Source: Carpediemonas membranifera BICM (Eukaryota > Protista > Fornicata). From it: DNA of 64,000 nt. The stretch covers positions 434,001 to 498,000 of the forward strand of contig JAHDYR010000001.1 of NCBI GenBank assembly GCA_019828565.1, read 5' to 3'. How positions within the stretch are numbered: position 1 is the stretch's first letter; each line of letters starts with the position of its first letter. A model generated the notes under the pieces. It ran no database searches and had not been told where the DNA came from. It was given only the letters and a program-made list of their open reading frames with translations. This document shows positions 7,455-63,431 of the stretch, piece by piece. A program made the position numbers and the translations under genes.

Positions 7455-7456
7455 CA

Positions 7457-13800: not shown

Positions 13801-16800
13801 CATGTCGAAGGTCCAACCCGAATGGCTCCACATCGGCCGGCTCATCAATACCTCCGAACAACCCCCCTAGCTTCGCTAACACCTCTTCGACCTCCACGGT
13901 CAGGTCCATTATCACCGGCTTGGCATCATTGGTCTTCTGCGCGCTCGACAGGTAGACTTCTTCGTCAAACTCATCGCCCTCCAGCTCCAGGAACGTCTTG
14001 GTCCCTTCTCCAGCTGTTGGTAGATGGATTTCCACCAAGCCCAAGGCCGTTAGCGTCGGGAATCCGAACACTATCTGCGGCTTAAGCCTCGGTAGGATGT
14101 AGAGTACTAGCTTCGCCGTAGTACGGCGTCCTGTCTTCGGAATAACTCCTAGATCGATGTTGACTTCGATCTTCTCATGCACGTTGTAAACCGTCCCGCC
14201 TTGCAATCGAACCTTCACATTTGTGGGGATAATTTCATCCGCGAACCCCAACTCGTCGATCAACGTCTTGTCGACAAAATCTGCGTCGGCCCCGGTGTCT
14301 AGCAATGTGTTAACGTCGCGACCGTCTACACACACCACGGCTTCAGGACGCTTCGCGGTCCCCTGGGCGACCAAAGAGGAAGAAGACAGAGAGAAACAAG
14401 CCTGAGTTTTTACACCCTTCTTGCGTTCGTCCCTCTGCTTCTTCCAGCACTTTGTGGCATCGTGGCCCACCTTGTTGCAGTAGGGGCACTTGGTAGACGC
14501 CTTGTCTTCATGCTTCTTCTTGGTCTTCTCGCCCTTCGACTCAACTGACTGACGCTGCGCCTCACGTCTACCCTTCTCAGCCTCCAGGGCTAGCTCAAAA
14601 GCCACCTTCATGGTCTCCTCCAGATCCTTGCTCTTCTTCTTGGCGCCGATTCGCTCTCTCAGGACTTGATAGCGGACTCCCGCGACGAACGCCTCCACGA
14701 GTTGCTTGGCTTGAGGCTGCAGCTCGCCGAAGTAGGAACACGTCTCCTTGAATTTCAGCACGTAATCGGCCATGTTCTCGACGAGATTGCCCGACTCGGG
14801 GCAATTCAGCTTCTTCAGCCATTCGATGGCCTCTAGCTCGTCGAGAGGTTGGAACATCTTGTTAATTAGGTCGATAAACTCCTCGTTCCACTCCGTCTCA
14901 CGATCGGGGTCATGCTCATCCATCGGTTCATCCACCACCTGGAGAAAAGAGCCCAGCATGGGAGAACGGCACTTAAACGTTTCGAGCACTTCGTTTGACA
15001 CCAGGTCGAAAATAGCAATCGGATCACGGCACATAGCGGCATAAGCACGCCAGGACTTAACCATATGGCGCCACTCCGCCACAGAGACCTTATTAAGGTA
15101 GGGTGCGTAGTTCAGTACTGTTTCCGGTACTACCATGGCAATATATATTGTTGCAGCAGGAAACACAGAGAGTGATTTAATTGATCCGGGGTAAATCAGT
15201 CATCAATTGATTACAGAAGGGCACCAGAACGCTACTACTGCGTCGCGCAGAAGATTTTTCAGGGAGATCGTTCGGAGCTAGCTCCAGAGCACGAAAAGAG
15301 GTGATACTGAATGCGAGGAGAGTGCTACGTGCCGCAGGGATCACCAACAACAGAGACGAGATCCTCCGTAACCCCAACGGAATCCTAGGGCTTCGAGACA
15401 TCTTCTACGCAATGACAGAGGCCTTAGACCCGAGAGAGGACGAAGAACGGCGCCTAGCAGAGGCCAAGGAGAACGTCACCATCCAACCAGGGCACAGGGA
15501 CATGAGCAAGTGGCCTTCCGACCACAAGATCGAAGAGGCCATCCTCCAACCGAGAGAACAGAGCAACATCGAGTGGGACAGTGAGAGAGACAGCATTGAG
15601 GGCAGAGAGACGGGCACATTCACGCTCACATCAGGGTATGGAGATGAGAAAGCCGTCGAGGCCATCGCAGGAGAGGAGGTGTGGGACCCCACTAACCAGG
15701 GCCTGGTCACCAGGATCGCTATGGAGCAGGACGATGGCACCTACAAGGTCCTCATCGACATCAGAGATTGCAAAGCATGGCAGATCACCAGATTCATGGA
15801 GGAAGGCAGGGACATCCTCAGGTTGCAGGCCCCGGAGGCGCCGGCGGTCTGGCAGGCAGCTTGGTGCAAGACAGGAGTCAACACGGAGGGCAGAGGCGCA
15901 ATAAGGGCACAAGGACAGGAGACGCCGCTCAGCAACAAGCTCGTCTTCTCTGACGTCAGGGCCAGGGTGATCAATGCCACCAGCCGCCGCCAAAAGAGGG
16001 ACAGGGAAGAAGAGTCAGACAACGAGAGCGGCGCACAGACCAGCCAAGAGGAAGACCCCAAACCCAAGGTCGTGTTGACACAAGCGGAAGGAGTGAGCGC
16101 CAGAAGGGGCCTTGGAGCCGAGCTTGATCAGCAGGAAGAAGAGAGCATACCCCGAGCATCAGAGGGAAGTGCATCAGCAGGGAGCCTACCGGAGGCATTG
16201 CAGAGTCAGGGTCAGAAGAAGCTCATCCTCGGTTCTATCGACTTCGAGTGTGGAGATCCTGGGAGTGAGAGGGCAGGGATCAGTGCGGTGCCGACAGAGG
16301 GGGGCTCGTGCTAGTGGACGTCGAGACGGGGGAGGTCGTTGGCCATGGCCACGGCCTCTTCTATGAGCCCAACCTGCCGGCCAACAAGGTGGACCAGAGC
16401 AGATACGCGACGTGGGCAGTGACGGGGATTCCCCCAGCGACGTTCGTGGAAGTGGACACAGGGGAGGTGCCGATGGACTATCAGCAGCACTTCAGCAGAT
16501 TTAGAGAGTGGGCCACGCGGCTCGCAGCCAAGCTGAGAGACAGAGAGACCAGGGAGAACTGGAAGCTAGTCCTTCATGCCAAGGGCGTCCACATGGAGAA
16601 GTTCCTCCTGACGAACGAGGTCAACGGGCTCAACAGGGACACCAGGGACTTCTTTAGAATGAGGCTGGTGGACGATAGCGAGCTGGCCGACGCCATCGAG
16701 GAGCTCGCCCCGGATAAGGCAAGAGAGTACAGGGCAAACTACGAGATCAAGAACTACAGGGAGATGGCAGATATATGGGCCAGCCAATGGCAGCGCAGGG

Positions 16801-18440: not shown

Positions 18441-18758
18441 GCAGGGTAAAGTGGTATTCTTTGAGAGTGATAGTGACAGTTGTCAGTTCTTTTCTTTTAA
18501 TCCAACCCTGGCTCCCACCCAGGGTCCGGCATTAGCTGAAATGCACTGCCGGTGGGCTGTGGCGGCAGCCAAAGGGGGGTCACGCCAATGCGCCCCCTCC
18601 TAAGTATCCCCTGCCCGAAGGTAAGGATGGTCACCAGGGTAACCCATAGTTGGCCCGCCATGGGTAACCGGAGCCGGCACGAAGGCCCCGTGACGGGACA
18701 AGGGCAGATTGCAGGGAATTTCCGAAAATTCGCAGGATAGGAAAGACGGAGTACAAGA

Positions 18759-22974: not shown

Positions 22975-24172
22975 TCTGAGTTTCCCTTGGATCTCGCTCT
23001 TCGGGATATGGATTGAGGATATTCCTTCCTCGGCGACTGTGCTATTTCTAGCGGCAATGGCGTTGAGTTCTTCTTCAATAACGCATAGGTATTCGTTGTT
23101 GGCAAGGAATTCGTCGTTTGCTTCCTCCTTGTTGGCCCTCTTCTCGGAACGGAAAGACATGTGGAACCCCTCGTTCGAGAGGAATCCCAGTGATCTGAGG
23201 TCCTTGGTACCCATAATAAGCTTCTCCTGCGTACCATCCAGCACGTAGAACCTGATCTTACAGACGATGTCCATCTTCTCGAGATGGGTAAATCGCACCG
23301 TCAACCGTTCTCGCGGGATCGACGTTGAGGGCAGTCGTTGTCGTAATGCTGCCCTTGGCAGAAGCGGCAGGGTCGAAAGGGCTTCTTGGTGGCCTTGGAG
23401 CTGGTCTCGCCCGGTGGGCGGGAGCCGACGGTCGTCGTCTTGTTGATCGTGGAGCTAGTGGGGGCGCTGTCAGGGGAGTCCGTGGTGGGCGTGTTCTCGT
23501 CTTCCACCGAAGCTACTATCTTAGCTAGTTTCATGAGCTCGTTGATGTTCTTCGGCTTGATGAGCGTTCTTTCGAGTTCGAGCTTCTTGTAGAACACCTT
23601 GGGTTTGAGGCGGTACATAAAGGCCTTACAGAGGACCTTGTCGAAGTGTTCCGCTCTCAGGGCGGCTAGCTCGCTGTCGGAGGCTGGTCTTTCTTGCTCC
23701 TTCTTGACAGCATTTCCTTCGTCGTCGAGGACGGCGACAGTCTCTTCACGCGCCTCTGTAGCGGCGAGAGGGCGTGGTTAAGGGCCGTTTCACGGCAGGC
23801 AACCTCTTTCACGAGGTCGGTGTACTCAGAAAAGTCGGCGCAGTAGTTTCTCATGGCCGCTGAGCGATTGAGTCCCTTGCTAGTTAAAGGACAGTCAATT
23901 GCATCAACGGCGTCCTTCAAGGCTCCCAAGGACTTCGGGATAGCCTCACTGCGTAGGTAAGTAATCGTCTGCTCGAGGGAAAGCTCTTCAATGCTCTTCC
24001 CTTGATTAAACTCTTCAGCGGCGCGTTGGAGCGATTCAGGCAGAAGCACCCCAGGCGGGAAATCAGCGTTTTGTGCCACCCAAATGCGCGCGGCCCGTTT
24101 GAAGTCACGAATGGCCGGGAGAGTTATCTTTTTGGGATCAAGGCTCGGCACATCTACAGTAATGTTAACCAT
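22975..24172 (-). CDS. Element A gag and partial protease (frameshifted; protease active-site segment apparently missing)
   Basis: ORFs 24172-23666, 23618-23301 (knuckle CRFCQGQHYDNDC) and 23304 onward (..LIMGTKDLRSLG). KSEIQGKLR rejoins GKLRALVKDY at 10246. No D(T/S)G seen. Confidence 0.85.
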
Positions 24173-24199
24173 GCCCAGTCGTCCAGAAAGTGATCACTT

Positions 24200-39300: not shown

Positions 39301-40183
39301 CGGCACGTGAACATGATGGCGGGGGGAGGAGGGAGTGGAGTGGCGAGGGATGACTCGAGCTGTGAGCCCAGGTCGGCGGCTGGCGAGACATGAGTCTGGG
39401 AGCCACCCTGCGCGACAAGAGGGGCGCACCAGGCATGTGGGTGGCGGAGAGAGGGCTCTGCGGCTGTGTGCCCTCGGGCTGAGACTCGGTCTCTGGGGTT
39501 GGGTTGCTCCGCGTCAGATCCGACACTGAAGCAGTCTATCACCGATACTGCCTGTGGCTCCGGAGCTGGCTCGGCTTGCGTTACTCGAGCCGCGTCGACG
39601 ATGGAGGCAGAATGATGGCGATGCTGAGGCAGGGGCGAGAGGGATGGCGTGCCAATGTTGCCCTCGTGGAGAGGCGAGGGAAGCGGGCCAGTAGTCCCTA
39701 CATCAGTTAGAGAGGGGGTGGGGGACGCCAACGGATGCTGCGGCCTTGGCAAGGCGCCCTCTGGATCCCTGACGAAGACGAACTCGTGGTCAGTAAGCGA
39801 GATCAGCCTCTTCGCGTAGCGCTGAACTCTATCGATCGTCTTGACACTTTGGATCTTCGGCCAACGAGCTGGTAGCTGCCCTAGAGCAGCCGTCGCCAAC
39901 CTGCAGAGAATCGCATAGAAGTCAGATGTCTTGATCTTCTTCTTGGGCGTCTGAAGGATCTTACGTAGCAGTTCATTGTCTCTAAGGACGTGTAAAACGC
40001 CCTCTTCGGCAAACCAGGTCTGTAGGAAGGTTGTTGGAATCATTCCGTGGTATTCTCTCTGAATCGTGTTGGCCTCTGCGAGGAAAGCCAAATAACGACG
40101 ATGAACGGATCTAGAATCGTCTGGAGGCGGATTGGGAAGCTCATTGCCGCCCGAATTGCCTTCCATCGTGATGTTCCGTTAAT
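36387..40183 (-). mobile_element. CRE-like RT-RLE non-LTR retrotransposon, full-length copy 1, at the tRNA-Leu 3' end
   Basis: Flanked by CCACTTCGCACA at 36375-36386 and 40184-40195. One long frameshifted ORF 40166->36610. AATAAA just before the 3' end, no poly(A). Confidence 0.92.
36610..40166 (-). CDS. Copy 1 ORF: RT, CCHC-like knuckle, restriction-like endonuclease (frameshifted)
   Basis: APGPTG, LRPVAMGEALRRI, DQFG, DLSNAYNT, GVQQGDPLSPLLF, YQDD, LNLSKC, GGLG. Then CPIC...HMVTC, RHD, E, RVD, IDV and KKRERY (RLE motifs). Confidence 0.9.
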
Positions 40184-40195
40184 CCACTTCGCACA

Positions 40196-43100: not shown

Positions 43101-43990
43101 ACCGTCGTGACGGCACGTGAACATGATGGCGGGGGGAGGAGGGAGTGGAGTGGCGAGGGATGACTCGAGCTGTGAGCCCAGGTCGGCGGCTGGCGAGACA
43201 TGAGTCTGGGAGCCACCCTGCGCGACAAGAGGGGCGCACCAGGCATGTGGGTGGCGGAGAGAGGGCTCTGCGGCTGTGTGCCCTCAATGAGACTCGGTCT
43301 CTGGGGTTGGGTTGCTCCGCGTCAGATCCGACACTGAAGCAGTCTATCACCGATACTGCCTGTGGCTCCGGAGCTGGCTCGGCTTGCGTTACTCGAGCCG
43401 CGTCGACGATGGAGGCAGAATGATGGCGATGCTGAGGCAGGGGCGAGAGGGATGGCGTGCCAATGTTGCCCTCGTGGAGAGGCGAGGGAAGCGGGCCAGT
43501 AGTCCCTACATCAGTTAGAGAGGGGTGGGGGACGCCAACGGATGCTGCGGCCTTGGCAAGGCGCCCTCTGGATCCCTGACGAAGACGAACTCGTGGTCAG
43601 TAAGCGAGATCAGCCTCTTCGCGTAGCGCTGAACTCTATCGATCGTCTTGACACTTTGGATCTTCGGCCAACGAGCTGGTAGCTGCCCTAGAGCAGCCGT
43701 CGCCAACCTGCAGAGAATCGCATAGAAGTCAGATGTCTTGATCTTCTTCTTGGGCGTCTGAAGGATCTTACGTAGCAGTTCATTGTCTCTAAGGACGTGT
43801 AAAACGCCCTCTTCGGCAAACCAGGTCTGTAGGAAGGTTGTTGGAATCATTCCGTGGTATTCTCTCTGAATCGTGTTGGCCTCTGCGAGGAAAGCCAAAT
43901 AACGACGATGAACGGATCTAGAATCGTCTGGAGGCGGATTGGGAAGCTCATTGCCGCCCGAATTGCCTTCCATCGTGATGTTCCGTTAAT
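40196..43990 (-). mobile_element. CRE-like RT-RLE element, full-length copy 2
   Basis: Near-identical to copy 1 (offset ~3810 bp). Bounded by CCACTTCGCACA at 40184-40195 and 43991-44002. Confidence 0.92.
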
Positions 43991-44002
43991 CCACTTCGCA
44001 CA

Positions 44003-44877
44003 TATGTTTATTGACGAATCGGTCAGCGCTACGGAGAAGCACACGGAGGGCTCGTTCGACGTCGTGGTCGCTCGTGGGCACGCTCGGGGTGGTGTGGGGG
44101 CGATACGAGGCGTTGGGCCTAAAAGTGCGCGTTGCAGATTTTCGGCACTTCGACACCGAATGCGGGAATTTCGCTGAGAAAGCAACGAATACGGAAAGTA
44201 GCGCTGAAAAAGAAATCAATATCAATTAGTCATCGCAAAAGGCGTTGTAGCCATGCGATGCAAGCACAGCGACCGCGTGCCGTGCTTCTTCAGTCCAATC
44301 ACGGGCAACGAGGCAGTTTCCTCTCCAAATTGCTGCGAAAACACGTTCATGAACACGTGTTGCGTTCTTGCCGCTCATCAAAGCGGTGAACTCCTTCATC
44401 CAACCGTTTGCCGTCACCACGTGGCCGCCCATCTCTGAGCGCCTACCGCAGCGCCCATCGAGGGACACTACGGCCGGGATCACATCAACATTCCACGGGG
44501 CGTACCGCTCACGCTTCTTCCGAGCCGTGTCGTGGTACTCGTTCGAGACCACAACATCGATGGCCGTAGGGTTCGTGCCGCGGTCGTTGAACGCGAAGAC
44601 GTCAACTCGGGCGTCTCTGTGCGTTGTGTCGGGGTCTTTCGTGTAACGGGAGGAGTGGCGGAGCCAGAACTCCTTCCTGGCAGGGACACCGTTGTTTGAG
44701 AGCTCCGAGAAGAGACTCTCGACGATCGTGTCGTGCCTGGCGGTGGTCTTGGCTCCTCCGTGAAGGCATTTGCATGTCACCATATGCTCTGGGGTGGCCA
44801 ACACGTGGCGGGGGTCAGCTCCGACGTTCAACTGGCCTGATGCCGCATTGGTTACTGACTTCAGGGCACAGATTGGA
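44003..44877 (-). mobile_element. CRE-like RT-RLE element, 5'-truncated copy 3
   Basis: Only the RLE region and 3' UTR are present. Followed by CCACTTCGCACA (44878-44889) and unique flank. Confidence 0.92.
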
Positions 44878-44892
44878 CCACTTCGCACAAAC

Positions 44893-44896
44893 TTTT
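44893..44896 (+). terminator. Probable original Pol III terminator of tRNA-Leu, displaced ~8.5 kb by the array
   Basis: TTTT 3 nt after the last copy of the tRNA 3' end (CGCACA-AAC-TTTT). Confidence 0.6.
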
Positions 44897-44930
44897 ACTC
44901 AAAGCAACATTCACCGCTAGCTAGACTAGG

Positions 44931-45125: not shown

Positions 45126-45127
45126 AA

Positions 45128-46881
45128 CGGGCGCCAGAGAGGTCCCACTTTTGCTGAATACGGTTGGCAAGTGAGACCGGGCGAAGGGCGGCGATAAAAG
45201 CTTTGGCGATGATCTTATCGAGTCCGCGGGTGGGGCTGGCTTTTCTCGGGGTGTCCTGCTCACTCGGCGTGCTGTCTGGCTTCTGGGTGATGACCTTGCT
45301 GAGGGCGGCCTCGTCTTCATCCACCTCGGCGGGCTCGGGCTCTGGCTTGGCGCCGAGCTCGGCGTTGAGAAGGGCATGGGCGTGGGAGCGCAGCTCCTCG
45401 GTCTCAGCCATGAGACGAGATACGGCCTCGATCGTGGACTTGGTTCGGTCCTGCGTGAGGGCCCGGATTTCTTGGATGGTTTTCTCAAGGGTTCTCGGGA
45501 AAGAAAGAGCGGTGATTTCGGCGAGAAGTTCTGCGTCGTTGAGTGCTTCGACGTCGACGTTGCGGACAAATCGGACATGACTGACTTGATCCTCGGTGAG
45601 GCACTCGTAAGCCGTTATGACGGTTGTGGTAGGAGCATGCTTCTGCGCGAACGTGAGGGCGCGTTTGAACGCGCGAACGGACTCTCTAGAGAAGTCCGAT
45701 AGTGATGGCGGAATCCAATTATTCATTTCGGAAAGTGATCACTGTGCCGGGGCGAAGAGATTGGAACATTTACATAAACTGCGGACGTGGATGCCTTATG
45801 ACACGTCTGAAACACGAACGGCGATGCGCGCCAGCCGAAGCCTAGCACTCTGTACTGAAACGCTCGTCCGTCTGGAAGATAGACTCCTAGCAGCTTGCGG
45901 TCCTCCTTCCGTACTGGTACTTGATGGTACCCGGACTTGAGGTCGAACTTGACCATCCAGTCGCCCCTCTGGAGAAGGGAGAGAGCTCTGCGCAGACCGT
46001 AGAGCCGGAAGGATGAGCGCTCTGCCGAGCAGTCGTTCAGTATCGTGAGGTTGTGAATGATCCTCTTCGACTCGCCCTTCGGCACAGTAAACAGCGAGGC
46101 GGTGTGTCGCAGGGAAGAGGGATTCACTTGCTCTATGACGCCTGTCTCTATCAAGGAAGGAATCTGCTGGACAATGAATGGGTCGACTGTCGGCTGTTGC
46201 CTTGGTGCTGGTGGTTGACTTCTCAGACGGATCTCGACCCCGTATCGTAACCAGTTGATCACCCGTTGTGATGCTCCCAACCTCTGCCACTCCCTCCACG
46301 CCGCGTTCATGCATGGAAAGAGGGTTAGGTGTGGGCTCTCTTGCCGGAGGATCCTGTCTGAGTGCGACCTCGGTCCTGAGCGCGGCCACCGCGGCGAAAA
46401 TTAGCGTCGCGCTTATCGCCCTTAGACTTGGCGCGGGCCGCCAGTTCCAGGACCTCGTCGCGATCAGGCACGCCCTTCGCCTTGCAATAGTTCTCGAACC
46501 GCTCTGCAGTAGCGTCAGTGTACACGTCCTTGATTAGAAGGTACTGGATTCTTGCAAAGAGAATGTTCTCGATCTCCTTCATCTTTGCGCCGTTCTCGAT
46601 CCTATTCATGGTCTTGTATACGAATCTGGCCTCATCTTCGAGGCCGAACCTCTTTGGCATCTCCAGGAACAGTGGACGGCGAGCTGCTTGCTGCTCCAAA
46701 ATTGCTTCCGATTGTATCTTAACCAAGCGCTCCAGCTTCTCGATACGCTTGTTAAGCTCATCGGGACTGTCTTGCGGCGGCAGGTCTTCGTTATCAGACA
46801 TCCTGCCGATGCGTTTCGAAGTGTGACCTAAAGTGCACATTGATCGGCGCGCGCAGGTGCCAGTGATGGTCCTGTGACAGG
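45128..46881 (-). mobile_element. Duplicated segment: DIRS Y gag and 5' RT, plus 5' LTR (45743-45803) and truncated gag of Gypsy D
   Basis: 45128-~46370 is near-identical to 62757-64000. Y gag-like ORF from ATG 46801 to 46325 (KRFGLEDEARF, homologous to X QRFGPRDEARF). Confidence 0.88.
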
Positions 46882-47271
46882 ATCCTAGCATCCTAACTCA
46901 TATCCAAATGGGGGGAATAATATTTACTCGGATTTCCTGTCTCTCCGCGTAAATATTCAGCGTCTTCTTTCGTTTCCCGCGTTCCTCGCGAGACGAGGCA
47001 GGTCCGTCGTTCGTGACCCTCTGCCTTGGGCGTGCCCGTGTCTTCTTCGGGCATCTTTCGAATTCTGCCATATCCTGCACATCTGGTCGAATCAATCCAA
47101 CGATCAATAGTCTCCGGCCCGCGCTCCCCGCGGGACCCTCCGACCCTCAGCACCCTGGGTGCCCTGGTCGAGTGCTGCTCGCTAGAGTATCCTAGCATCC
47201 TAACTCATATCCAAATGGGAAACCGACCAATCCCGTCCTCCTCAGGGAGTTAGCTGCACTATGCAAGCTTC

Positions 47272-50200
47272 TGTGCCAGCGGCGACAGGCGCACAGCGGG
47301 TCCTGCAGCAGGACACGGGCGGACATCTTGGCCGGGCACACCTTCCCTCAAGGCTCTGACGGGTGGGAGAGTAGAGACAACTTGTACTAGCACGGATCGT
47401 TTATTTGTTTGTGCAGGACGCTGAACCAATGTCCTGCCTTGACAGTAGCTTAGAGTTGCCAGCCATTGCGGCGGCAGGCGGCCTCGACTGGCTGTCTCCA
47501 TGAAGGGCTGACGTTGAGAAAGTCGTCGAGAGCGGCCATCTGGGCTGTCTCAGCGTTGAGCGTGACCTCCGAATCCTCTGCTGACTCGCACCCGGCCCAG
47601 TGGACTAGGAGGTATATGGTCTTCGATCTGGCTGGACGACGGGCCGAGACGATGTGGTCTACGGCGTACTCCCCCTCTTGCTCGGCGACTAGGGTCTTGA
47701 GCTCGTCGAGGTCCGTGGAGCCAGTCCAGGCCTTGATTCGGCGGTCGGAAACTTCCATGGTCTTATCGGTCGTGATGTGTTGGATGATCGACGACGACGT
47801 GTGGTCACCGCGGCGTAGATATCTGAACGGACCGCGCCAGTTTGCCTCGATCTTGGCGGACTTCGGACGAAGGAGGAGTACGAGAGAGCCGGGCTCGTGC
47901 GTGGGGGGCACATTGGTGGGAATTGCAGCCTTCTTGGCGGCGTAGCGAGCGAGGGCTTCGCGGGCGGCCTTTAGGCGCGAAGGATCGGCCTTCCCTTCGG
48001 TGAATGGGAAGAGGATGTCCAGAGGAGAGGCCTTGGTGGACGAAACCTGCTTGGAATTGAGGATAAGCTCGACAGAGGGCAGATGTTCGTCCCAGGGTTG
48101 CATCGTAGCGGGCTTGATGATCTTTTCGATCTCGAAGTTGTACCTTTCCACAATGCCGTTGGACTGTGGGCTGTAAGGGGCGGAAAAGCGGTGATTCAAC
48201 GAGAGTGCGCATGTAAGCTCATCTATTAGCTTCGCTGTGAACTGCGAGCCGTTGTCGGACTGGATCTCGCGAGGTACGCCGTAGGCACCGCAGTAAGCAT
48301 AAAGTGCGCGAGCGGCCGCGAGGGCGTCAGTGGACGTGGCTGGGAACAGTCTGATGTACCTGGAGAAGGTGTCCACGATCGAGATGATGTAGGAGTTTCC
48401 CGACGACGTGGTGGGTAGGGGTCCAAGAGTGTCGACCTGAACTCTGTGGAAAGGAGCGTCCGAGGAGGATGGGTGATACGCGATGGGGCACTCTCTGGCA
48501 GGGGCATGCAGCTGGCAGTGGGGGCAGGCCTTGATCCAGCGTCTGATGTCTTTGTACATGCCAGGCCACGTGGTCTTGGCGGCTTTGACACGGCGAATGC
48601 ACTCGTCGACGCCGAAGTGTCCGACCGCGTCATTGTGGACGGCGGAGAACTTGTCGAAGTGAGGCTCTTGGACGACAGCGTTGACTACAGGCGCGTCGGG
48701 GAGGATCCGGGAGAGGACGTCTGCAATGACGTTGTCGACGCCACGGACGTGCTGAATGGTGAAGCGAAACTCGGATAGTCGTAGGGCCCAGCGGAGAAGC
48801 TTTTTGACAGTCGGGGCCTTCCGTCTGAGTTGGACGAGGTTGCTATGGTCGGTGTGGACATGTAGGTCAGACTTGATCTGGAAGAGGGGTTCGAAGACCT
48901 TGTTGGTGAGGACAGAGATCACGGCATGCAACTCTTGTTCGTATGTTGACCAATTCGACATGGTCTTGTCGTAGGTCTTCTGGAAACAGGCCAGAATTGA
49001 GCGAGTACCGTCCTCCTCATCTTGTATTAGCACGCCTCCTTCGCCAAGTGATGAAGCGTCGGTGTAAATGTGCCAGGGTCTATCGAGGTCTGGGTATGTT
49101 AGGCTGATGTGAAGCGCCAACTGGGACTTGATGTCGTCAAAAGCAGTCAGTTGTTCCTCGCCGAAGACGAACTCGCCGGCTCTGAGTGACCGGTTGAGTG
49201 TGGCGAGTGACTTGGTGGCGTCAGGCAGGAACTGTGCGATGTAGTTGATCTTTCCGAGGATTGACTTCAACTCAGACTGGTCCCGGGGGGGCCTGAGGCT
49301 GACGATGGCCTGGATGCGGTCGGGGTCGACATGTATGCCATTTCGGTCGACGATAAAGCCGACCGATCTGACCTCGGAGGCGCCGATGACGCATTTTGCG
49401 GGCGAGAGCTTGAGGTTATGCTCCCGCAAGGCCATGAATATGGTGCGCAGGTCGTCGATGAACGTGTCATCTGAGGGGGCGGCCTCGAGGATGTCGTCGA
49501 GGTACGCCTTGCAGCGGCCGGTGGCAATGGCGGGTGCCATGACGGCCTGGATGGTACGCTGGAAGTACGAGGGCGCCGAGGCAAGGCCGAACGGGACGCG
49601 GGTGTACTGTAGGTAGTCGTCTGGCGTGACAAAGGCGGAGAGGGCTTGTGAATCATCGTGGAGGGGAAGCTGGTGATATCCCTTGACGAGGTCAAGAGCA
49701 GCGAACCACTTCGCGCCGCGCATGGACATCAGAAACTCTCTGATGTTAGGTAGCGGGAAGTGATCCTCCACGAGGTGCTTGTTCAGCTCCGAGTAGTCGA
49801 CGCACATGCGTGTCTTGTCTTTCTGCTTGACGAGGACGATAGGTGAGGCGAAAGGGCCTTTGGAGGGAGTGACGATGCCATTCTGGGCGAGCTCCGCTAC
49901 GATCTCCTTCGTCTTCTTCCTGTTATCAGGCGAGAGGCGGCGCGGCTTAATTTGCACGAGGGTATCGTCCTTGACGTGCAAGACCATGGGGGAACGTTGG
50001 CCGGTTCAGGACCGAGCGGCTCGAAGATGTCTGAGAACTCTCGCAGAAGTGGCACGACGCGAGAGCGGAGCTCGTCCGAGGGTATTTGGACTGACTGCCA
50101 GCCCGAGCGGTAGTCTGCAAGGGCTGACTGTAGCCTTGATCCGGACACCGAGAACACTGGGAGGACGACGTCGTCAGCCGCTGGCGTAGAGTGTGTGAGC

Positions 50201-51546
50201 CCAAGCGATAGGCCGTCTGAAGTGAGAACGCCGAGGTCTCTGAGAGTGTCGCACCCGATTAGAGGACACTGGCGGCCAGGGAGGATGATGAAACGGACGG
50301 AGACAGCGACAGGGAATCCGGCGAGGCCCGTGAAGAGGATGGGCGCATCTACGGCCTGATTGACGGTGATTGAGCTGCCGTCGGCGAGAATGACCGACAC
50401 GGGGTCGATGCTGGTGCGGGGGAGCTGCCATATCTTTGCGTAACGATCACTCGTGCATGAGATTGCTGCGCCCGTGTCAATGATGGCTTGGAAGTGGGAC
50501 GTGCCGCATGAGGCGGGCACCTTAAGGGCGTCGGCTCCGCGGCTTTTCGCGAAGTTGACCTGTGTCTGGGGACCACGTGACTGACGAGAGGGGCAATCTC
50601 GGTCGAAGTGGTTGCCCTGACAGTGGCGACAGGGGCGTGCCGGCTGCCGGGTGTTGTCGCCCGAGGGCCCGGTGTTGCCGTTATTGTTGGCTGGAGTGGA
50701 GCTCTGGGCGTAGTAGCCGTATCGGAGAGCCTCCTCGCGGGCGTTGTCGTCGCGTTTGGCAACGCGGAGGGCAAGGCGCTGGAGATCATCCATGGCGGTG
50801 GGCTTGCGTTCAGCCTTCTTGAACTTCATGACCTCCTTGAAGGGCTTCGGACGTAGGTTGTCGATGAAGATCCTCATACAGTCTTTCAGAAAGCCTGAGG
50901 GGGATTGAGGATCGGGATCGTCGTCATCAGGGGCATCACCGTCGACGTGCCTTGCAGGGACGATGGCTGCTTCTTCGTAGTCGCTGTCGGAGCTGCTGTC
51001 GGATTTGGAGTCGGAGTCGTTGTCGTCATCACGTTGTAGTACGGTGTGCAGGTTAAAAACCTCGTTGAAGCGGTGGATATAGTCTCGGACTAGAACGATT
51101 CTAGACTTCTTGTGCGTTGCGTCTACGGCACAGACAATCTTGTCGAGACGTTCCTTGAGTGAGAGTAGGTCTCTTGGAGCGATCAGACGCTCGATGAGGT
51201 GACCCACCTCTTCGTCAGTAAGCGTGTCCAGATCGGCATCGAACTGGAGCTCGAGGGCGTTGTAGAGGTCGTCGTCTAAAAACAGGGAGATCTTGGCCTC
51301 GGGGTAGTATACCTGGAACTTTCTGAATGAGCGCTTGGCGGCCCGCCAAGAGTCGGCGGAAAGACCGGCCAAGGGGATACTGGGCTGCTCTATGGGAGTA
51401 GGCAACACCATGATGGAGAGTATTAATACTGTGCTCGAGAGGACGGAAAAACAACTTGGTGCTTTAGTCAAAGAGAAGTCGACACAACAGTGTCGACCGG
51501 AATGGCGGATCGAATCGCCAATCAAATATTTTATTTGATTGGCACA
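47272..51546 (-). mobile_element. Ty3/Gypsy chromodomain element C, with non-matching terminal segments (boundaries uncertain)
   Basis: gag-PR 51411->49897 (CRHCQGNHFDRDC, IIDTGA). pol 49987->47450 (YLDD, TDAS, DTLGP, SDNG, chromodomain EYAVDHIV...VHWAG). Candidate termini 47272-47340 and 51430-51546 are each bounded by TGTGC...GGCACA but are otherwise different. Confidence 0.85.
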
Positions 51547-51615
51547 CTGCCACAGCGGCTCCTTGCCGCCTCGGCTCACCGGACGTCGCCATGACGATCC
51601 TCGGTGCGATGGTGT

Positions 51616-54353: not shown

Positions 54354-54383
54354 CCACCATCGCTTTTGGAGTGGAGGGAAAGG

Positions 54384-54869
54384 CTAGGACCTCGAGCGGC
54401 GGCCGTTGTGGCCGCCCTCCGGTTGAAAATTACGCCTCTTGCGCTTACCTTTCATCTTGGCGCGGGCTATGATGGCGTCGATGTCTAGCTCTGACTCAAT
54501 GACGGATGCCTTGAGGGCAGCAGCTGCATAGTCGGTTGCCGCGTCATCGTAATCGTCCTTGAGGAGCAGTAGCTTATAGCGGCCGAGGAGTCGGAGGCGA
54601 AGTGTGTTGGCATCGAGCATGTCGGTGGCGATGTCCCTTAGAAGCTCTTTGATGAATCTGGCTTCATCGCGGGGACCAAAGCGTTGCGGAAGTTCTAAAT
54701 CGGCGAGCGTGTTGAGGAATGAGCGGTTTCTTGCATTGACTGGCTCGTCGTAATCGGGCCCCTGCGCGATGTTCGCTTCAACCGAAGCTAAACGGCCAGA
54801 AAGCTCGCCTAGAACCCTTAGTATCTCCTCTTGTTGCGGATTGGGCGTGCCCGTGTCTTCTTCGGGCAT
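54384..54869 (-). CDS. DIRS X gag-like ORF
   Basis: First ORF of the element; ATG lies inside repeat A. Homologous to the Y ORF at 46325-46801. Confidence 0.7.
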   Translation of the reverse strand: MPEEDTGTPNPQQEEILRVLGELSGRLASVEANIAQGPDYDEPVNARNRSFLNTLADLELPQRFGPRDEARFIKELLRDIATDMLDANTLRLRLLGRYKLLLLKDDYDDAATDYAAAALKASVIESELDIDAIIARAKMKGKRKRRNFQPEGGHNGRRSRS

Positions 54870-55165
54870 CTTTCGAATTCTGCCATATCCTGCACATCTG
54901 GTCGAATCAATCCAACGATCAATAGTCTCCGGCCCGCGCTCCCCGCGGGACCCTCCGACCCTCAGCACCCCGGGTGCCCTGGTCGAGTGCTGCTCGTGCT
55001 AGAGTATCCACAAAGTGTGGCTCTATAACAGAGAGCCCTCCTCTTAAATCCAACCAAAATGGGACAATCCCGCAAGACGTCCCTGTGGGACTAAAGCTTT
55101 GGGCCGGCGAGTCCGTCTCGCCTCGGCCGTTCCCCTCGAACGCGGATGTTTAATGGAGGGGGTGG

Positions 55166-56060: not shown

Positions 56061-56770
56061 CCTGAACGCCATCACATTGAACCGTAGGCGTCCTCTGTCC
56101 TGTAGGTGAAGTAGGTGGGCCAGATCTGAGCTCGAAGCCGGGACGGAGAGACGGAGTTTCCAGGACGTCCAACTCTTGAGGAGTCTCATCTCCGGCGCTT
56201 GAACCTCTGGGTAGAGGAGAAAGACTGCTGAGGTCCAAGACCTCGGGTGTCCAGTCTGAGTCTGAACTCTCGCTGTCGCTATCTTCTGGACTATGGCTGC
56301 CATAGACGAATTGGGGGCCCAGAGGACGCGACATCCAAGCCTTACGTCTACGTCCGTTGAGACTGTCTGGACTGGACCCCACTCCGCGAGGACAGATTCC
56401 ATGCTGGACTCCAGAGAGGAAGGGAGTCGTGAGAAGTCTCTGGACAGCCGATATGCTGCCAGGTTGATGATGCCCGGAGTGTGTAGTCCACGGAGTGTCA
56501 GGTTCCGGTCCTCCGCCTCCTTCTGGATCTGGGCTAGAATGTGCAGGGCCTGAGGTGGAGCCTTCGTAGACCCCGCCTTGTTGAGCCAGGCCAGAGCTGA
56601 TGTGTTGTCTGAGAAGATCGATAGCTCGCGTTGGGAACTCTGTCTGCCGATCAGACGGATGCCCTGTAGGATTCCCGCGAGCTCCTTCACGTTGATAGAT
56701 TCTGCTCTTAGTTCTGGAGTGAACGTGCCCGAGGCTGAGGTCCCGTACTCGCCGTGCACGGCTGCTCCCC

Positions 56771-58322
56771 TGTGGTTTGACTATACCTGTTTTACTGGGA
56801 GAATAGACTTCGACACAGGGGTGTCGAAGTCAATCCATAAATGTTCTTAAATTGTACTGACTGACACTGCCCCTCCATGCTCAACTGACTTGAGTATGAA
56901 TAACTTGTGCCGGTAGGCCTCACAGGGGAAAGCCTGTGCTAACCTACTTCACCGTTGGCGGCTGGGGAATAGCCCAGTGCCCGGGAAGGGTACTCTGCCT
57001 TAGCTCGGTAACCCTTGCTTCACCGTCGCTAACTGTGGGTAGCACAGCAGCCGGAACACCGTTGACACACTCTTACTGCCACGTAAGGGTGTCCGGTACA
57101 ACCGTAGTTGTTCTGTGGTGACTTATCTCCAAATTGATTGACTCAGAATTTCGTGGTACCACTGTGTAAGTATTGCGTCATACGCTCAAGGGTTAGTCTT
57201 ACCCTGGCTTACCGCCCTCCCACGGGCCATTACTGGGCCGTATGGTCGTCGATTAGTTCATTCGGATCCTTAAAATGCACAAATGGCTTCAGTTCGAAAC
57301 CACCATGGTATGCGGCCTTGAAAGCCCTCATTCTTACATAGCGTTCGAATAACGCCTCTAGACACACTTTGCGCACTTGATCTTATCTCTCTTACAGTCC
57401 CGGGCGAAGTGACCTTGCTTGCCGCAGTTCTGACACTGCTTACTGGCTCTGTCGGGCCGTCTCGTATCAGGCTGGGAACTGGAGTGGTTGTACGCGTGCG
57501 GTGGCTCAGGAGCTTGGCGTTGGAGGGGAGGCTGGTCAGGTCTTGCCTGTTGACGTTCTTGGCGGCCCGGACGGGCTCTGCTAGACTTGACGCGGCTTCC
57601 AGGATGTGTTGACGACACTGGATGGAGGGATGCGTATGATTCAGAGATGAGACGAGCTTCCTCGAGCTTCTTGCAGATCATAAGAGAGGTAATGAAGGTC
57701 TCATCGAGCGACATTCCTACTACGGCGTCTTTGACCTCCTCGCGGAGGAACTCGTCCAGGATTCCGTTCAGGAACATCTGGCGGATCGTAGCAGGCGCCA
57801 GATCAGGCTTGATGATGCGGTACCTTGTACGGAACTTGTCCAAGTACTGTGTGAAGCGCCCCGAATGGACGCCCTTCACAGAGAGCTGGAATAGTTGGCG
57901 CTGTAGGATAGCTGATTGAGGTTTGATGGCGTCAACGACGGCCTGGAAAGCTAGGTCTTCCGCTCCGGACTTTTTCATACGGACTTGCGGTGCGCGAAAA
58001 ATAAGGGAGGATGATGTCTTCTGTCTCCTCGCGCGGCGGTACACCTGCTTAACATCAACACCCGATGAACTGCAGAATGTTAGAACTGCAGGGCCTAAGC
58101 GCTTAATGAGGCGGCGCTTTCCACCGGCCTGAACATGTCTCGTTAGCTTTTCGTGAAATGCCAGAATGGCACTAATGCTTGGCTCGTTCACTGACGGGCC
58201 GTTTTCAGTCATTTGAAGTAATATTACTGTGGTTTGACTATACTGTTTTACTGGGAGAATAGACTTCGACACAGGGGTGTCGAAGTCAATCCATAAATGT
58301 TCTTAAATTGTACTGACTGACA
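56771..58322 (-). mobile_element. Non-autonomous gag-only LTR element E (1.55 kb)
   Basis: LTRs 56771-56866 and 58228-58322 (96/95 bp, one indel; TGTG...GACA). 4-bp TSD CCCC. PPT GGAGGGGCAG. No pol recognised. Confidence 0.9.
57358..58212 (-). CDS. Element E Gag-like protein
   Basis: MHR-like FTQYLDKF...MFLNGI. Knuckle CQNCGKQGHFARDC. ATG 15 nt after the 5' LTR. Confidence 0.85.
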   Translation of the reverse strand: MTENGPSVNEPSISAILAFHEKLTRHVQAGGKRRLIKRLGPAVLTFCSSSGVDVKQVYRRARRQKTSSSLIFRAPQVRMKKSGAEDLAFQAVVDAIKPQSAILQRQLFQLSVKGVHSGRFTQYLDKFRTRYRIIKPDLAPATIRQMFLNGILDEFLREEVKDAVVGMSLDETFITSLMICKKLEEARLISESYASLHPVSSTHPGSRVKSSRARPGRQERQQARPDQPPLQRQAPEPPHAYNHSSSQPDTRRPDRASKQCQNCGKQGHFARDCKRDKIKCAKCV

Positions 58323-58874
58323 CCCCACTTGACTCCAGATGCGTCTGTCGATACGACGAGGTCTAAGGAGGGGTGAGCGCCCCAAAGCGACTGAAGCTCT
58401 CTGATGTCTCGGACTGGGCGCTCTCTTAGCAGTAGCAGCCACTCTTGCAGTAGCTCCTTGGAGAGTGGGTCCTGTTGAAGGTGTCTCAGCCGGAGGAAAG
58501 CCCCGTGGGCGGTTGTAGCGAAGTAAGTCAGTCTCCCGAGGATCTTGGCCCAAGTCTCCTGATCGATGGTCTTGCCTGCCAGAGCCTGATGAATGTGAGA
58601 GGAGTAACGTTTGGCCTTGTCCGCCGGGAGGCGTATTGTAAAACTCGCGGAGTCTATCACGAGCCCCAGATAGACCAATGACTGAGTCGGTGCCCATTCT
58701 GACTTCTCCTCTGAGGTGAGGACACAGAGGTCGGCTAGAGTCCGCCTGATGCGCGGCACCGCCCTCCTCAGGATTTCTCGGTCGCGGTGAAATAAGAGGA
58801 AGTCGTCGAGGTAGACAACGATGGTAAGACCCGTCCGAAGGGCTAGTATCTTGGCGAGTTGGTTGGTGATCGTC

Positions 58875-61800
58875 TGTGCCGGGGCGAAGAGATTGGAACA
58901 TTTACATAAACTGCGGACGTGGATGCCTTATGACATCCTACCCCCCTTAAGCTTGAGCTTGTGGGACTTGAGGTAGTCACGTGCCGCAGTGACGTGGCGG
59001 AGCCCGTCAGCGGGTTCCCATGTGGGATCGTAGTCGCCCTCCCAGCAGACGAGGAGCTGCAGTGTGCCGTTGCGGCGACGGTGCTTCTCGATGCCTTGCA
59101 CGACGTACGTCTGCTCGTCGGAGGCGGCGAGGTTCTTCAGGCGGCTGAGCCCCGACTTGGTGTTGAAAGGAAGGACCTGGTCTACGTGAGCCATGAAGGG
59201 GGCGCTCTCGAAAAGGTCGACCAGCTGAAGGGTGTTGTTGTCCTTGATGGCGAGAATCTTGAACGGGCCGGCGAAGCCATGCAGCTTTGGGGTCTTCGTC
59301 CGGTTGAGCAGGACGAGGTCGCCTTCCTTGAAGCTAGTCGGCTGGCGGTCGGCGTTGGCCTTGGCGAGGCGCTTGTCTACAGTCTCGCGCTGCTTCTCGG
59401 CCGCCCTAGAGGTCAACTTGGAGAGGTGGGCTCGAAGTAAAGTGATGTAGGCTGAGGCTGAGGCAAGGGGCGAGTCATTGTCGCTCGGTCGGAGGATTCT
59501 AGCGACTGTGGAGCTGGGGTCGAGTTGGTCTCCATACAGCATGGCGTGGGGTGTGACCCCAGTGGCGCTGCAGGTGGTTGTGTTCAGCAGCAGCTGAACT
59601 ACCGGAAGGAGGTCGCTCCAACGGGAGAACTTGTCGAATTGGAGGATCAAACAGCGAAGATGCTTCATGACCTCCGCGTTACGACGCTCTACCAGCCCAT
59701 TCGACTGAGGGTGGTAGGGGAGGGTGAATTGCTGGGTGATGTCCGCGCTTTCGAGCAGGGCCTTGACGACGTTGCCGGTGAACTCAGGCCCGTTGTCGGA
59801 CTTGATGAACAGGGGAGTCCCATGACGGGTAATCACCTGGCGCCAGAGGGCCTCTGACGCTGCATCAGCTGTGTTCTCGTCCGTCGCGGCCAACTCAGTG
59901 TAGCGAGTAAACATATCGACCATAACTGTGATGTATCTGGAGCCGACTGCGTCTGCCGGGATTGGACCAATAGTATCCACTGCGACAGTGTGGAACGGTT
60001 TGTACACTGCTGTTGTGCGGAGCTCTGCCTCGGCGAAGTTGCGTAGGCGAGCTTTCTGGCACTCGTCACATGAGGCGATGAACTCCTCGACATCTGTTGT
60101 GCAGCCTGTCCAGGTATAGCCGTCTGCTCTCAGGCGTTCGATGGTAGCCTTGGCGCCGTGGTGTCCTCTGTGGGCGATCTGTATCAGCTCCTTTCGGAGG
60201 GGTCTGCACACGGTTGAAGTAGGGATGACGACGAGGCCGTCATTGCGGCGAAGACCGTCGCTGTCTACGGTCAGCTTGGAGACGGTAGAGTCGTCTGTCT
60301 GGTGTTTGATGAGTGTGTCATGGTAGCGGGAGTCAGTCGTGATGGCTGCGACAGTGGGCGAGGTCAAGTGACCGCAGCGGCTCAGCGCGTCTGCGACTGC
60401 GTTCTGTAGGCCGGGAACGTGCTCGACATCGAACTTGTAGTCTGCTAATGTCAGTCTCCACCGGTTGATCTTGTCGTTCTCGGATGACTTGGCGATCATG
60501 TAAATAAGATTACGGTGGTCGGTCCGTAGGAGGAACCTCTTCAGGCGTAGGAGGGGTGACAGGGTCGGGTGTGTAAGGCAAAAGACAATGGCAAATAGCT
60601 CCTGCTCACACGTGGCCCAGCGCGACTGGGTTGACGTGAATGTGTGAGAGAAGTAGGCGAGGACCTGTGTCTTGTCGTCCTTTGTCTGCCATAGTACGCC
60701 GCCTGCTCCGATGTTGCTAGCGTCTGTCTCGAGCGTCCAGTCGGCGTCGGCGTCCGGATGTGCGATAAAGAGATCGTCAGTGAACAGGGTCTTCAGGCCG
60801 TCGAAAGCGGCGTCGTGCTCCGCTGTCCATTCCCACAGACGGTCCTTTTGCAGAAGATCGTTGAGAGGTCTCATGTACTCGTGTCGTGTATGGGGAACGA
60901 ATGATGCGAGGTACTGGAACTGTCCGAGGACTACGCGAAGCTCGTGGACGTTGGTGGGTGCAGGTAGATCGCGTAGGGCTTGGGTCCTGGCTGGGTCGAC
61001 GTGTACTCCGGCCTGGTCGACCGTAAAGCCGACAATCTTGGCGCTGGTGGTGCCGAAGACTCCCTTCTTGGCGCTGAACTGAACGCCTGCAGCGTCCGCG
61101 CGTGTGAGCAGGTCGCGGAGAATGCGTAGGAAGGAGTCATCGTCACGGGCGTAGATGAATATGTCGTCGATGTAGGGGTTGGCGCCCTTGTACAACAGTG
61201 GGGCGAGCATGCCTTCGATCTCCCGCTGGAAGTGAGAAGGCGCGTTGCAAAGGCCGAACGGCATCCTGAGGAATTCCTCGTAGACGCCCGGGGCGGTGAA
61301 GGCCGTCTTAGGCACGTCGTCTGGGTGCATGGCCACCTGCCAGTAGCCCGACGTCAGGTCTAGCGTCGCAAAGCGTGTGCAGCCCGACGCGAGGTTGAGG
61401 AGTTCTCGCATGTTGGGGATCGGGTGCCGGTCGGGTACTGTCCAAGAGTTGAGGCGGCCGTAGTCGATACAGAGACGGTAGGCGTCGCCCTTTGCGACCA
61501 GGACGATGGGGCTTGCGTAAGGCCCCTCAGAGGGCTGTGTGATCTCGTCCTGGCGCAGGCGCTCGACGTATGGCAACAGCCACTCCAGCTTCTTCGGGTG
61601 TAGGTTGCGCGGGCGAAGACGGATCGGAGGGGCGTTGTCGTAAAGCGGGATGCGCATAGGGGCAAACGAGCACGGCTGTTTGCTTATGACGGGGTCGAAT
61701 AGGTGATCGAACCGACGGAGGATCGAATGTAGCTCGTCGGTCTGGGCCTTGGTGGAGAGCTCGTGTATCTCACACGCGTCGGTGTGAAACTCGCTTGAGG

Positions 61801-63431
61801 AGACGGCCTCGACGAGGGCGTCGAGGTACTTGTGGAGTGGGAGGCCATCGGTGGCGTCCTCCGGGCGTGAATCCGGAAGAAGTGGGATGTGGAGGCCACT
61901 CTCGGAGAGATAACCGAGCGCGCGAAGCACGTCGCATCCAATGAGCACACGTTCAGTGGCGCGCGTCATGATGTAGAGGATGAGATCGACGATGACGTTT
62001 CCAGATGTGCTGGGCAACGTGATCCGCGCTTGGACGTAGTGAGTGATGAGGATGGGCTCATTGGTAACGGACTGAACAGTAAATGGCTTTTCAAGCTCAT
62101 GTGTGACGAGTTGGAGCGTCTTAACGGAGGTTGTGGAGATGATCGTGATTGCGGAGCCGCTATCGATCAATATCACCTGTTCTTGGTCATTCACAGCTCC
62201 CTTAACTGAGAATGCAGTTGAAGCGGCAACTTCTTCGATAAAGGCATCATCACAAGCATTGTGTGCGACTTCGACTTCGTGGACTCCTGGACGAGAGTTG
62301 ATCAGCTTGGATCTGTCCCGGAGCACCATGTTCCCAGCGCGTCTCTCGTCGGGGCGAGGTTGTGGCTGCTGGGATGACTGTTGCTGCTGCTTCTGAGCAG
62401 CTGGTGCCGGCTGTGGCTGAGCCGGTTTGTTGGCCGCTTGGGGCTGGCGTTGCGGGCCGCGGCGGGGTGGCCTTTGGTAGCCTGGGGCTGTCCGGGCGTG
62501 CTGCCGCGGTGCGGGCAATCAGCCTTCCAGTGCATGCCTCCACAGGAGCACGCGTATGGAGGAGGGCGCCGGCGCTCGCGGCTGGATCTGGTGTTGGCGT
62601 TCTGGCTATGTTTCGGGCCAGTGCTGGAGCTCGTGATGGAGCTCGTGCTGGAGGATGTGATGGATATGTCTTGAATCACGCTTCCGAGGACTTCACGGGC
62701 GTCAATGGCGTGCAGTATGAGCTCGCGCGTGTGCACAAATAAGCTATCGATGTCCCGGGCGCCAGAGAGGTCCCACTTTTGCTGAATACGGTTGGCAAGT
62801 GAGACCGGGCGAAGGGCGGCGATAAAAGCTTTGGCGATGATCTTATCGAGTCCGCGGGTGGGGCTGGCTTTTCTCGGGGTGTCCTGCTCACTCGGCGTGC
62901 TGTCTGGCTTCTGGGTGATGACCTTGCTGAGGGCGGCCTCGTCTTCATCCACCTCGGCGGCCTCGGGCTCTGGCTTGGCGCCGAGCTCGGCGTTGAGAAG
63001 GGCATGGGCGTGGGAGCGCAGCTCCTCGGTCTCAGCCATGAGACGAGATACGGCCTCGATCGTGGACTTGGTTCGGTCCTGCGTGAGGGCCCGGATTTCT
63101 TGGATGGTTTTCTCAAGGGTTCTCGGGAAAGAAAGAGCGGTGATTTCGGCGAGAAGTTCTGCGTCGTTGAGTGCTTCGACGTCGACGTTGCGGACAAATC
63201 GGACATGACTGACTTGATCCTCGGTGAGGCACTCGTAAGCCGTTATGACGGTTGTGGTAGGAGCATGCTTCTGCGCGAACGTGAGGGCGCGTTTGAACGC
63301 GCGAACGGACTCTCTAGAGAAGTCCGATAGTGATGGCGGAATCCAATTATTCATTTCGGAAAGTGATCACTGTGCCGGGGCGAAGAGATTGGAACATTTA
63401 CATAAACTGCGGACGTGGATGCCTTATGACA
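58875..63431 (-). mobile_element. Ty3/Gypsy chromodomain LTR retrotransposon D
   Basis: Identical 61-bp LTRs at 58875-58935 and 63371-63431 (TGTG...GACA). 4-bp TSD CGTC at 58871-58874 and 63432-63435. PPT AAGGGGGGTAGGA. Confidence 0.95.
58928..63354 (-). CDS. Element D gag (63354-62302) and pol (62518-58928)
   Basis: CSCGGMHWKADC, LIDSGS, YIDD, TDAS, ADALSR, HHG...CDEC, DTIGP, SDNGPEF, chromodomain TYVVQGIEKH...VCWEGDYDPTWEP. The stop codon lies inside the 3' LTR. Confidence 0.93.

Follow-up and report, generated by a model that had tools for sequence, protein, structure and literature searches.

How do retrotransposons with long terminal repeats (LTRs) start minus-strand DNA synthesis when a palindrome occupies the place of the tRNA primer site? 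The question is raised by five Ty3/gypsy elements, here called A to E, in a stretch of 64,000 nt from Carpediemonas membranifera BICM (GCA_019828565.1, contig JAHDYR010000001.1, positions 434,001–498,000), which will be referred to as the window. Minus-strand priming belongs to the steps that are best conserved when retroelements replicate, and to our knowledge there are few exceptions to the use of a tRNA, namely self-priming of the Tf1 type and the unexplained sites of Skipper and GalEa. An earlier note on the window had claimed that five LTR families replace the tRNA site with a perfect palindrome, and had suggested that one element RNA, paired with another through this palindrome and cut behind it, serves as the primer. 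In our analysis, the palindromic elements seem to have abandoned the tRNA as a primer. A putative primer site that is tRNA-independent and self-complementary is well supported by the position of the palindrome and by its pattern of change; the dimer-and-cut mechanism itself seems plausible. We see about an even chance that the palindrome is the minus-strand primer site of a large gypsy clade and acts in trans, from one element RNA to another.

Palindromes at the ends of the 5' LTRs

The elements were delimited by comparing the window with itself and by aligning the repeat pairs together with their flanks. All five lie on the minus strand and have very short LTRs (61–117 bp in the window), each of which starts with TGT and ends with ACA. 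Every element carries a perfect palindrome that starts inside the LTR, with its final base or final two bases, so that the LTR-terminal A always lies within it. In element A, the palindrome (AAAGTGATCACTTT, 24187–24200) overlaps the terminal A at 24200 of the 77-bp 5' LTR (TGTG..ACA, 24200–24276), and the gag ATG is found at 24170–24172. The palindrome of B (CAATATATATTG, 15139–15150) overlaps the terminal CA of a 67-bp LTR (15149–15215) and is followed by the ATG at 15134–15136. In C, the palindrome (AGTATTAATACT, 51419–51430) adjoins a 117-bp LTR (51430–51546; ATG at 51409–51411), the start of which was inferred from a TGTGCC stub at the 3' end of the element and from its likeness to the LTR of L032/L036. 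Element D has its palindrome (AGTGATCACT) at 63362–63371, a 61-bp LTR at 63371–63431 and the ATG at 63352–63354, and a second copy of its palindrome (45734–45743) and 5' LTR (45743–45803) lies inside a 1245-bp duplication. The palindrome of E (AGTAATATTACT, 58217–58228) is bordered by a 95-bp LTR (58228–58322) and by the ATG at 58210–58212. All six palindromes were thus found where the earlier note had located them, its LTR-to-ATG distances of 27, 12, 18, 16 and 15 nt for A to E are correct, and the LTR alignments confirmed the overlap with the terminal A, or CA in B.

Palindromes of at least 10 nt are common everywhere, so only their position counts as evidence. In a sample consisting of the window and 200 kb from elsewhere in the genome (20 fetched 10-kb stretches around integrase matches of different score classes; 264 kb in total), 304 such palindromes were observed against about 258 expected, which is about one per kb. 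An LTR pair was present in 11 of the 20 fetched stretches, the other nine holding truncated or nested copies that are uninformative. At the 5' LTR ends, a perfect palindrome of 10–14 nt starting on the last 1–4 LTR bases was found in 13 of 13 cases, compared to a palindrome of at least 10 nt at a single one of the 13 3' LTR ends. With a chance of about 0.006–0.007 per junction, the probability of 13 out of 13 is roughly 1e-28, and the palindrome at the 5' LTR end is far beyond coincidence. The enrichment behind the LTR for which the earlier note had proposed a test is therefore real in this sample. An independent listing of palindromes followed by a long open reading frame (ORF) returned the same sites and, in addition, elements whose second LTR lies outside the fetched stretch.

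No primer site beginning with TGG was seen in the window elements, in agreement with the earlier note, or in the loci L031–L053. In the C. membranifera elements examined, the gap between palindrome and ATG measures 1–14 nt, and there is no other candidate primer site between LTR and ATG. In the standard scheme of reverse transcription, the annealing position of the primer 3' end determines the right boundary of the LTR. Because the primer end fixes this edge, the palindrome would be the primer site by position, and the LTR ends determined here support the earlier claim that it lies where a minus-strand primer must anneal.

The same position bears on the alternative that the palindrome is only a signal for dimerisation or packaging, of the type of the retroviral dimer initiation site (DIS) or of PAL in Ty1, and that priming relies on something else in this place or close to it. 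In retroviruses, dimer initiation sites are indeed short palindromes in the 5' leader (PMC5445492), and the dimer energies predicted for the palindromes (see below) would be sufficient for that role. However, a mere dimer signal would not have to abut and overlap the LTR end exactly where the primer 3' end must sit, nor does the leader offer another candidate site at which priming could occur. Furthermore, the palindrome is not displayed in a hairpin loop as DIS is, judging from palindromes folded alone, apart from their flanking leader. We consider an exclusive role in dimerisation unlikely; the two roles are not mutually exclusive.

Most families have an AT-rich NNTAAA motif 13–41 nt ahead of the LTR end (distances counted by hand). 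Giardia has AT-rich initiators and AGTRAAY poly(A) signals, and the NNTAAA motif could be a start signal and a poly(A) signal at once, which would leave a few tens of bases at most for the LTR regions R and U5. Across the palindromic elements examined, the LTRs are 53–134 bp long and thereby among the shortest functional-looking LTRs that we are aware of. The shortest ones, with 53 bp (L034:3965–4017 and 7733–7785) and 61 bp (element D), both keep TG..CA ends, a target site duplication and the NNTAAA motif.

The motif also enters a second alternative, in which primer and primer site of a Tf1-like system have become one: the LTR-terminal A would be the start of some transcripts, and their first 10–14 nt, i.e. 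the palindrome, would pair with the site on full-length RNAs before a cut releases them as primers. The CA at the LTR end followed by the palindrome resembles an initiator dinucleotide, the NNTAAA motif precedes the LTR end by 13–41 nt in most families, and the terminal A is always inside the palindrome. However, all of this is a reading of motifs, and the AT-rich motif may equally well be an initiator or a poly(A) signal, so that we regard a start of transcripts at the palindrome as rather improbable.

Sequence variation and symmetric change

At least 12 distinct palindrome cores occur in the genome, and symmetry and position are the only features that they have in common. The cores include GTGATCAC, GTTATAAC and GTAATTAC, further GTATTAATAC, GTAATATTAC, GTATCGATAC, GTACTAGTAC and GTAGATCTAC, as well as ATGTCGACAT, ATATCGATAT, AATATATATT and one 18-mer, ACAGTAATTAATTACTGT. 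Several palindromes, among them ACAGTGATCACTGT and CAGTAATTACTG, extend deeper into the LTR, and all are AT-rich with a GC content of 12–43%. Where sister families differ, they differ by symmetric double changes: GTGATCAC in A corresponds to GTAATTAC in L049, GTGATCAC in L034a to GTTATAAC in L046 and ATGTCGACAT in L039 to ATATCGATAT in L045. The sister relations of these three pairs, each of which represents one symmetric change, were taken from trees of the reverse transcriptase (RT), RNase H and integrase (IN) segments. Among elements with LTR ends defined independently of the palindrome, no one-sided change was found. The earlier note had described, for the window, palindromes that vary in sequence but not in symmetry or position, and this statement is thereby extended to at least 12 cores and to changes between close relatives.

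This pattern of change is relevant for the possibility that the palindrome acts as DNA and is bound by a dimeric protein of the host or of the element, be it as a promoter or initiator, a methylation site or a nuclease site. Palindromic protein-binding sites are common, and an AT-rich sequence located 1–14 nt upstream of the gag ATG would be well placed for such a function. However, a single protein would not read at least 12 different cores that are alike only in symmetry and position, and family-specific proteins would leave unexplained why stability is held roughly constant by a trade of length for GC content (see below). A function as DNA would moreover leave the elements without any primer site, and we judge it to be decidedly unlikely.

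Alternatively, each family might be primed by a host tRNA, a tRNA fragment or another small host RNA that matches its site. This is the default for LTR elements, and priming by internal parts of tRNAs is established in copia elements; 63 tRNA places are listed in the genome. Against host RNAs stands, besides the fact that no site begins with TGG, that more than 12 different primers would be required. In addition, a fully complementary primer must contain the same palindrome, and tRNAs, with stems that enclose loops of at least 7 nt, should lack perfect palindromes of 10–20 nt. Host RNAs as primers are therefore very improbable in our view.

In two of the 13 elements (D and L050), the host flank beyond the 3' LTR is similar to the palindrome that the element itself carries, which may be chance. 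The flank of D (58866–58875) reads GACGATCAC, compared to the palindrome GTGATCAC, and at the 3' LTR junction of L050 the flank GTATC compares with the palindrome GTATCGATAC. The 3' junction of A (7374–7383) makes the palindrome CACAGCTGTG; the target site duplication of A is not clearly readable. Such likeness between flank and palindrome may reflect insertion guided by microhomology, as described for integrase-independent events of Tf1 (PMC11042837).

Pairing potential

A site that equals its own reverse complement has, within each element, the same site on a second RNA copy as the sole RNA with which it can pair. In other words, a primer complementary to the palindrome must itself carry that palindrome, so that only the site itself qualifies. 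In 12 complete elements, no match to the palindrome within two mismatches was found elsewhere, LTRs and 3' region included. The best matches to a complement of the site in the LTRs reached 5–8 of 10–14 positions, which is the chance level. The earlier note had seen no LTR complement for Tf1-type priming, and this observation proved to be general among the 12 elements. For the elements searched, a Tf1-type primer taken from the LTR was consequently ruled out, because the LTR holds no complement of the site.

Pairing in cis could in principle take place as in the 'Conserved Hairpin Site' of fungal GalEa elements, with the palindrome folding onto a second copy 12–41 nt downstream. The GalEa palindrome likewise includes the LTR-terminal A (PMC5445492). 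However, when 20 sites were tested for a downstream copy, 19 were no better than chance, and the match in element A (nominal p about 0.03) is not remarkable given the number of tests. As there is no near copy anywhere in the 12 complete elements either, the hairpin with a second downstream copy was rejected, and we regard pairing of this kind as extremely unlikely.

The predicted energies of self-folding for the isolated palindromes are 0 to -2.8 kcal/mol, and those of the homodimers range from -10 to -22 kcal/mol, with most values between -10 and -18 kcal/mol. Length offsets AT-richness: the predicted dimer energy is -13.6 kcal/mol for a 10-mer with 40% GC and -13.8 kcal/mol for a 16-mer with 12% GC.

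Distribution and phylogeny

Assembly GCA_002919055.1 (PPCM01), which may be an enrichment of Carpediemonas frisia, was the only close relative among the matches listed, with a helicase that is 65% identical. On the contigs examined from this assembly, each of about seven 5' junctions has a palindrome in the same place, including AAGTGATCACTT, AATATCGATATT, AGTTTCGAAACT, CAATAATTAATTATTG, CAGTAATATTACTG and also AGTATTAATACT, the palindrome of element C. A metagenome scan with a profile of the clade returned 80 loci. Among those with enough upstream sequence, about 27 have an AT-rich perfect palindrome of 10–20 nt with ..CA before it and a polyprotein ORF after it. In the three metagenome contigs with genuine LTR pairs (L103, L131 and L132), the palindrome is located at the LTR end in every case.

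Trees were calculated from trimmed RT-RNaseH-IN segments with a quick search in IQ-TREE and with FastTree (118 rows), using rows other than Tf1/sushi reference sequences. A split with 100% local support separates all 45 palindromic rows from 33 rows on the opposite side, which include animal and plant elements and none of which was scored as palindromic. The two elements checked on the opposite side (L054 and L056) have LTRs of 194–254 bp and TGG sites; in L137 and L138, which also fall there, a candidate palindrome of 10 nt precedes the ORF. Rows without a palindrome on the palindromic side are mostly contigs with an incomplete 5' end, and some elements of the palindromic clade carry a chromodomain. 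Both C. membranifera and GCA_002919055.1 contribute to at least two old subclades, indicating that the palindrome is older than the split between them. Because a well-supported split keeps every identified palindromic row together in the trees, one old origin with later diversification is more parsimonious than five independent replacements. The earlier claim that five families replace the tRNA site with a palindrome thus stands with respect to the place that the palindrome occupies, but gives way with respect to independent events.

Two metagenome loci within the palindromic clade, L095 and L096, have a 268-bp repeat that ends in ..GGCA and is followed by GTTGGGCGA, 11 nt and TCGCCCA. This site forms a 7-bp stem with a loop, contains TGG and is not a palindrome; it could represent a reversion to tRNA priming or a variant of a GalEa-like hairpin. 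In the metagenome locus L082 (149–160), the ATG is immediately preceded by the palindrome TACTAATTAGTA, the core of which, ACTAATTAGT, is identical to one of the two main sites of fungal GalEa.

Structure and surroundings of the window elements

The order of the Pol domains, direct LTRs with TG..CA ends, target site duplications and polypurine tracts place the elements among gypsy (Metaviridae). Pfam domains in D are PR, RT, RNaseH and IN in that order, A and C have RT-RNaseH-IN, and in B the domains are split across two ORFs and accompanied by a chromodomain. LTR pairs and polypurine tracts are present in A, B, D and E, and each 3' LTR is preceded by a G-rich tract. Target site duplications of 4–5 bp could be clearly read for B, D and E only. 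The 3' LTR of A (7380–7456, 77 bp) follows the polypurine tract GGGGGAGAGGTAG at 7457–7469. B, which is nested within A, has its 3' LTR at 10933–10999, a polypurine tract at 11000–11009 and the target site duplication CCTTC. The corresponding features of D are located at 58875–58935 (61 bp) and 58936–58948, with the duplication GACG, and those of E at 56771–56866 (96 bp) and 56867–56876, with the duplication GGGG. The 3' end of C (47335–47349) consists of an intact polypurine tract (GAGGGAAGG, 47341–47349) and a 6-bp LTR stub (TGTGCC, 47335–47340); like all features listed here, it lies on the minus strand.

The LTR-palindrome-gag stretch of family D has matches with 98–100% identity at no fewer than 27 other loci in the genome. 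The segmental duplication of 1245 bp mentioned above (45128–46370 and 62756–64000, 99.8% identical) holds the 5' end of D and its upstream flank. The 5' copy at 45734–45803 is not an independent insertion, because the flank is duplicated as well. Element E is an internally deleted copy from a family of roughly 6.4 kb, and the view of E as a small gag-only family of its own was rejected. For the same reason we dropped an argument for heterodimers, which would have drawn on E sharing just 17 nt (LTR end and palindrome) with the L042 family.

Further repeats surround the elements. A reverse transcriptase unit of 3.8 kb (RVT_1 only) is present at 36305–44878 in 2.2 head-to-tail copies that abut a tRNA-Leu(AAG) gene (36305–36386), and each unit starts with the last 14–16 bases of this tRNA. 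The repeated part of 892 bp is not an LTR, because ORFs run across it. An Rfam scan of the window detected only the tRNA-Leu, with no hammerhead or other match at the RVT_1 units. Next to the 5' LTR of A, a tandem array of nine copies of 858 bp, nearly all 98–100% identical, extends from 24700 to 32500 and lies in long minus-strand ORFs with Ephrin_rec_like repeats. A direct repeat of 169 bp (47026–47192 and 54841–55009, 98% identical) brackets C and about 3.3 kb more, and its two copies may be the LTRs of a surrounding element that C entered.

A possible mechanism and its relation to known systems

If the palindrome is used in trans, two co-packaged genomic RNAs would pair antiparallel via the 10–20 nt palindrome, and an RNase H-type activity would cut one strand just 3' of it, as in Tf1, where an RNA duplex is cut. 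The cut would leave a 3'-OH opposite the LTR-terminal A, which reverse transcriptase could extend over the very short U5-R to yield strong-stop DNA, and the same RNA duplex would double as dimer linkage. The scheme would represent a symmetric, intermolecular relative of Tf1 self-priming. Levin in 1996 reportedly described that the RNase H of Tf1 cuts an RNA duplex and thereby frees an 11-nt self-primer, and Haag, Lin and Levin in 2000 are said to have found Tf1 priming possible between different mRNA molecules. We infer the pairing of RNAs in trans, the existence and place of the cut, and the cutting enzyme.

Several points weigh against priming between two RNAs. Transcript ends, cut and primer are predictions from the DNA sequence, and the contig collection contained no record of the gag protein of D. 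A cut 3' of the palindrome parts the 5' leader from the body of the RNA that is cut, and with both partners cut, every template would lose the site that the second strand transfer requires, so that cleavage must be asymmetric or partial. The lack of a matching host tRNA is an argument from the structure of the palindrome. Lastly, the metagenome loci were searched for perfect palindromes, which makes 'perfect' partly circular there; perfection is an unbiased observation only in elements defined by their LTRs.

The closest parallel to the arrangement is found in GalEa, a Ty1/copia lineage of fungi with a 'Conserved Hairpin Site' of unexplained mechanism (Donnart et al., 2017, BMC Genomics 18:410; PMC5445492). 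As in Carpediemonas, a site of about 10 nt lies right after the 5' LTR, is palindromic only if the final A of the LTR is counted, and takes the place of a tRNA site. The GalEa sites ACTGATCAGT and ACTAATTAGT even share their centres (GATC and AATT) with AGTGATCACT and AGTAATTACT found here. However, GalEa belongs to the copia lineage in Pezizomycotina and has LTRs of 138–311 bp, whereas the elements described here are gypsy elements with LTRs of 53–134 bp, in which IN follows RT-RNaseH instead of preceding RT. In GalEa, a second conserved 9-mer downstream allows a hairpin with an A/A mismatch, while a second copy is lacking here, and palindrome variants are far more numerous in the present clade.

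The self-priming group of Tf1/sushi elements, comprising Tf1, Tf2, Maggy, Skippy and others (PMC6934838), resembles the proposed scheme in being independent of tRNA and in taking the primer from the element's own RNA, with a duplex of about 11 bp in Tf1. In contrast, the Tf1 primer is the 5' end of the transcript and is complementary to a non-palindromic site, whereas the palindromic elements have no LTR complement. Skipper of dictyostelids is a chromodomain gypsy element that has lost the TGG site and also lacks an LTR complement, but it has a polypyrimidine stretch instead of a palindrome (PMC5006619). Retroviral DIS and PAL of Ty1 are, like the palindromes described here, short self-complementary RNAs in the 5' leader, which in those systems join two genomes. 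Both systems have their tRNA site elsewhere, and DIS is placed in a hairpin loop, whereas here the palindrome occupies the primer site itself.

Our literature search, which left most subscription journals outside, returned no description of palindromic sites, whether for gypsy elements or for Carpediemonas, and the single study found that mentions both Carpediemonas and transposable elements says nothing about primer sites. The novelty suggested by the earlier note therefore has to be divided. The observation has a partial precedent in GalEa (PMC5445492) and is not wholly new, but no gypsy example was found, and as a mechanism, priming through a self-complementary site would be new.

Significance

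If the proposed role of the palindrome is true, a clade-wide palindromic site that compensatory change keeps symmetric would constitute a third, mechanistically distinct solution to the problem of priming, and dimerisation and priming, which are separate in retroviruses, would be tied together. It would also provide a mechanism that can be tested at the GalEa site, for which an explanation has been lacking since 2017. For genome annotation, it would mean that the whole palindromic clade may be overlooked or ranked too low by pipelines for LTR elements that demand a tRNA primer site, and a palindrome starting on the LTR-terminal A would provide a simple rule for flagging its members. LTRs of 53–134 bp would further show how little sequence can hold U3, R and U5. 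With a probability that we place slightly short of even, a widespread clade of gypsy elements in Carpediemonas and in many uncultured eukaryotes from lake and marine metagenomes primes without host RNA, by means of a self-complementary site that would couple genome dimerisation to priming, with one genomic RNA being cut to prime the other, and perhaps convergently so in GalEa.

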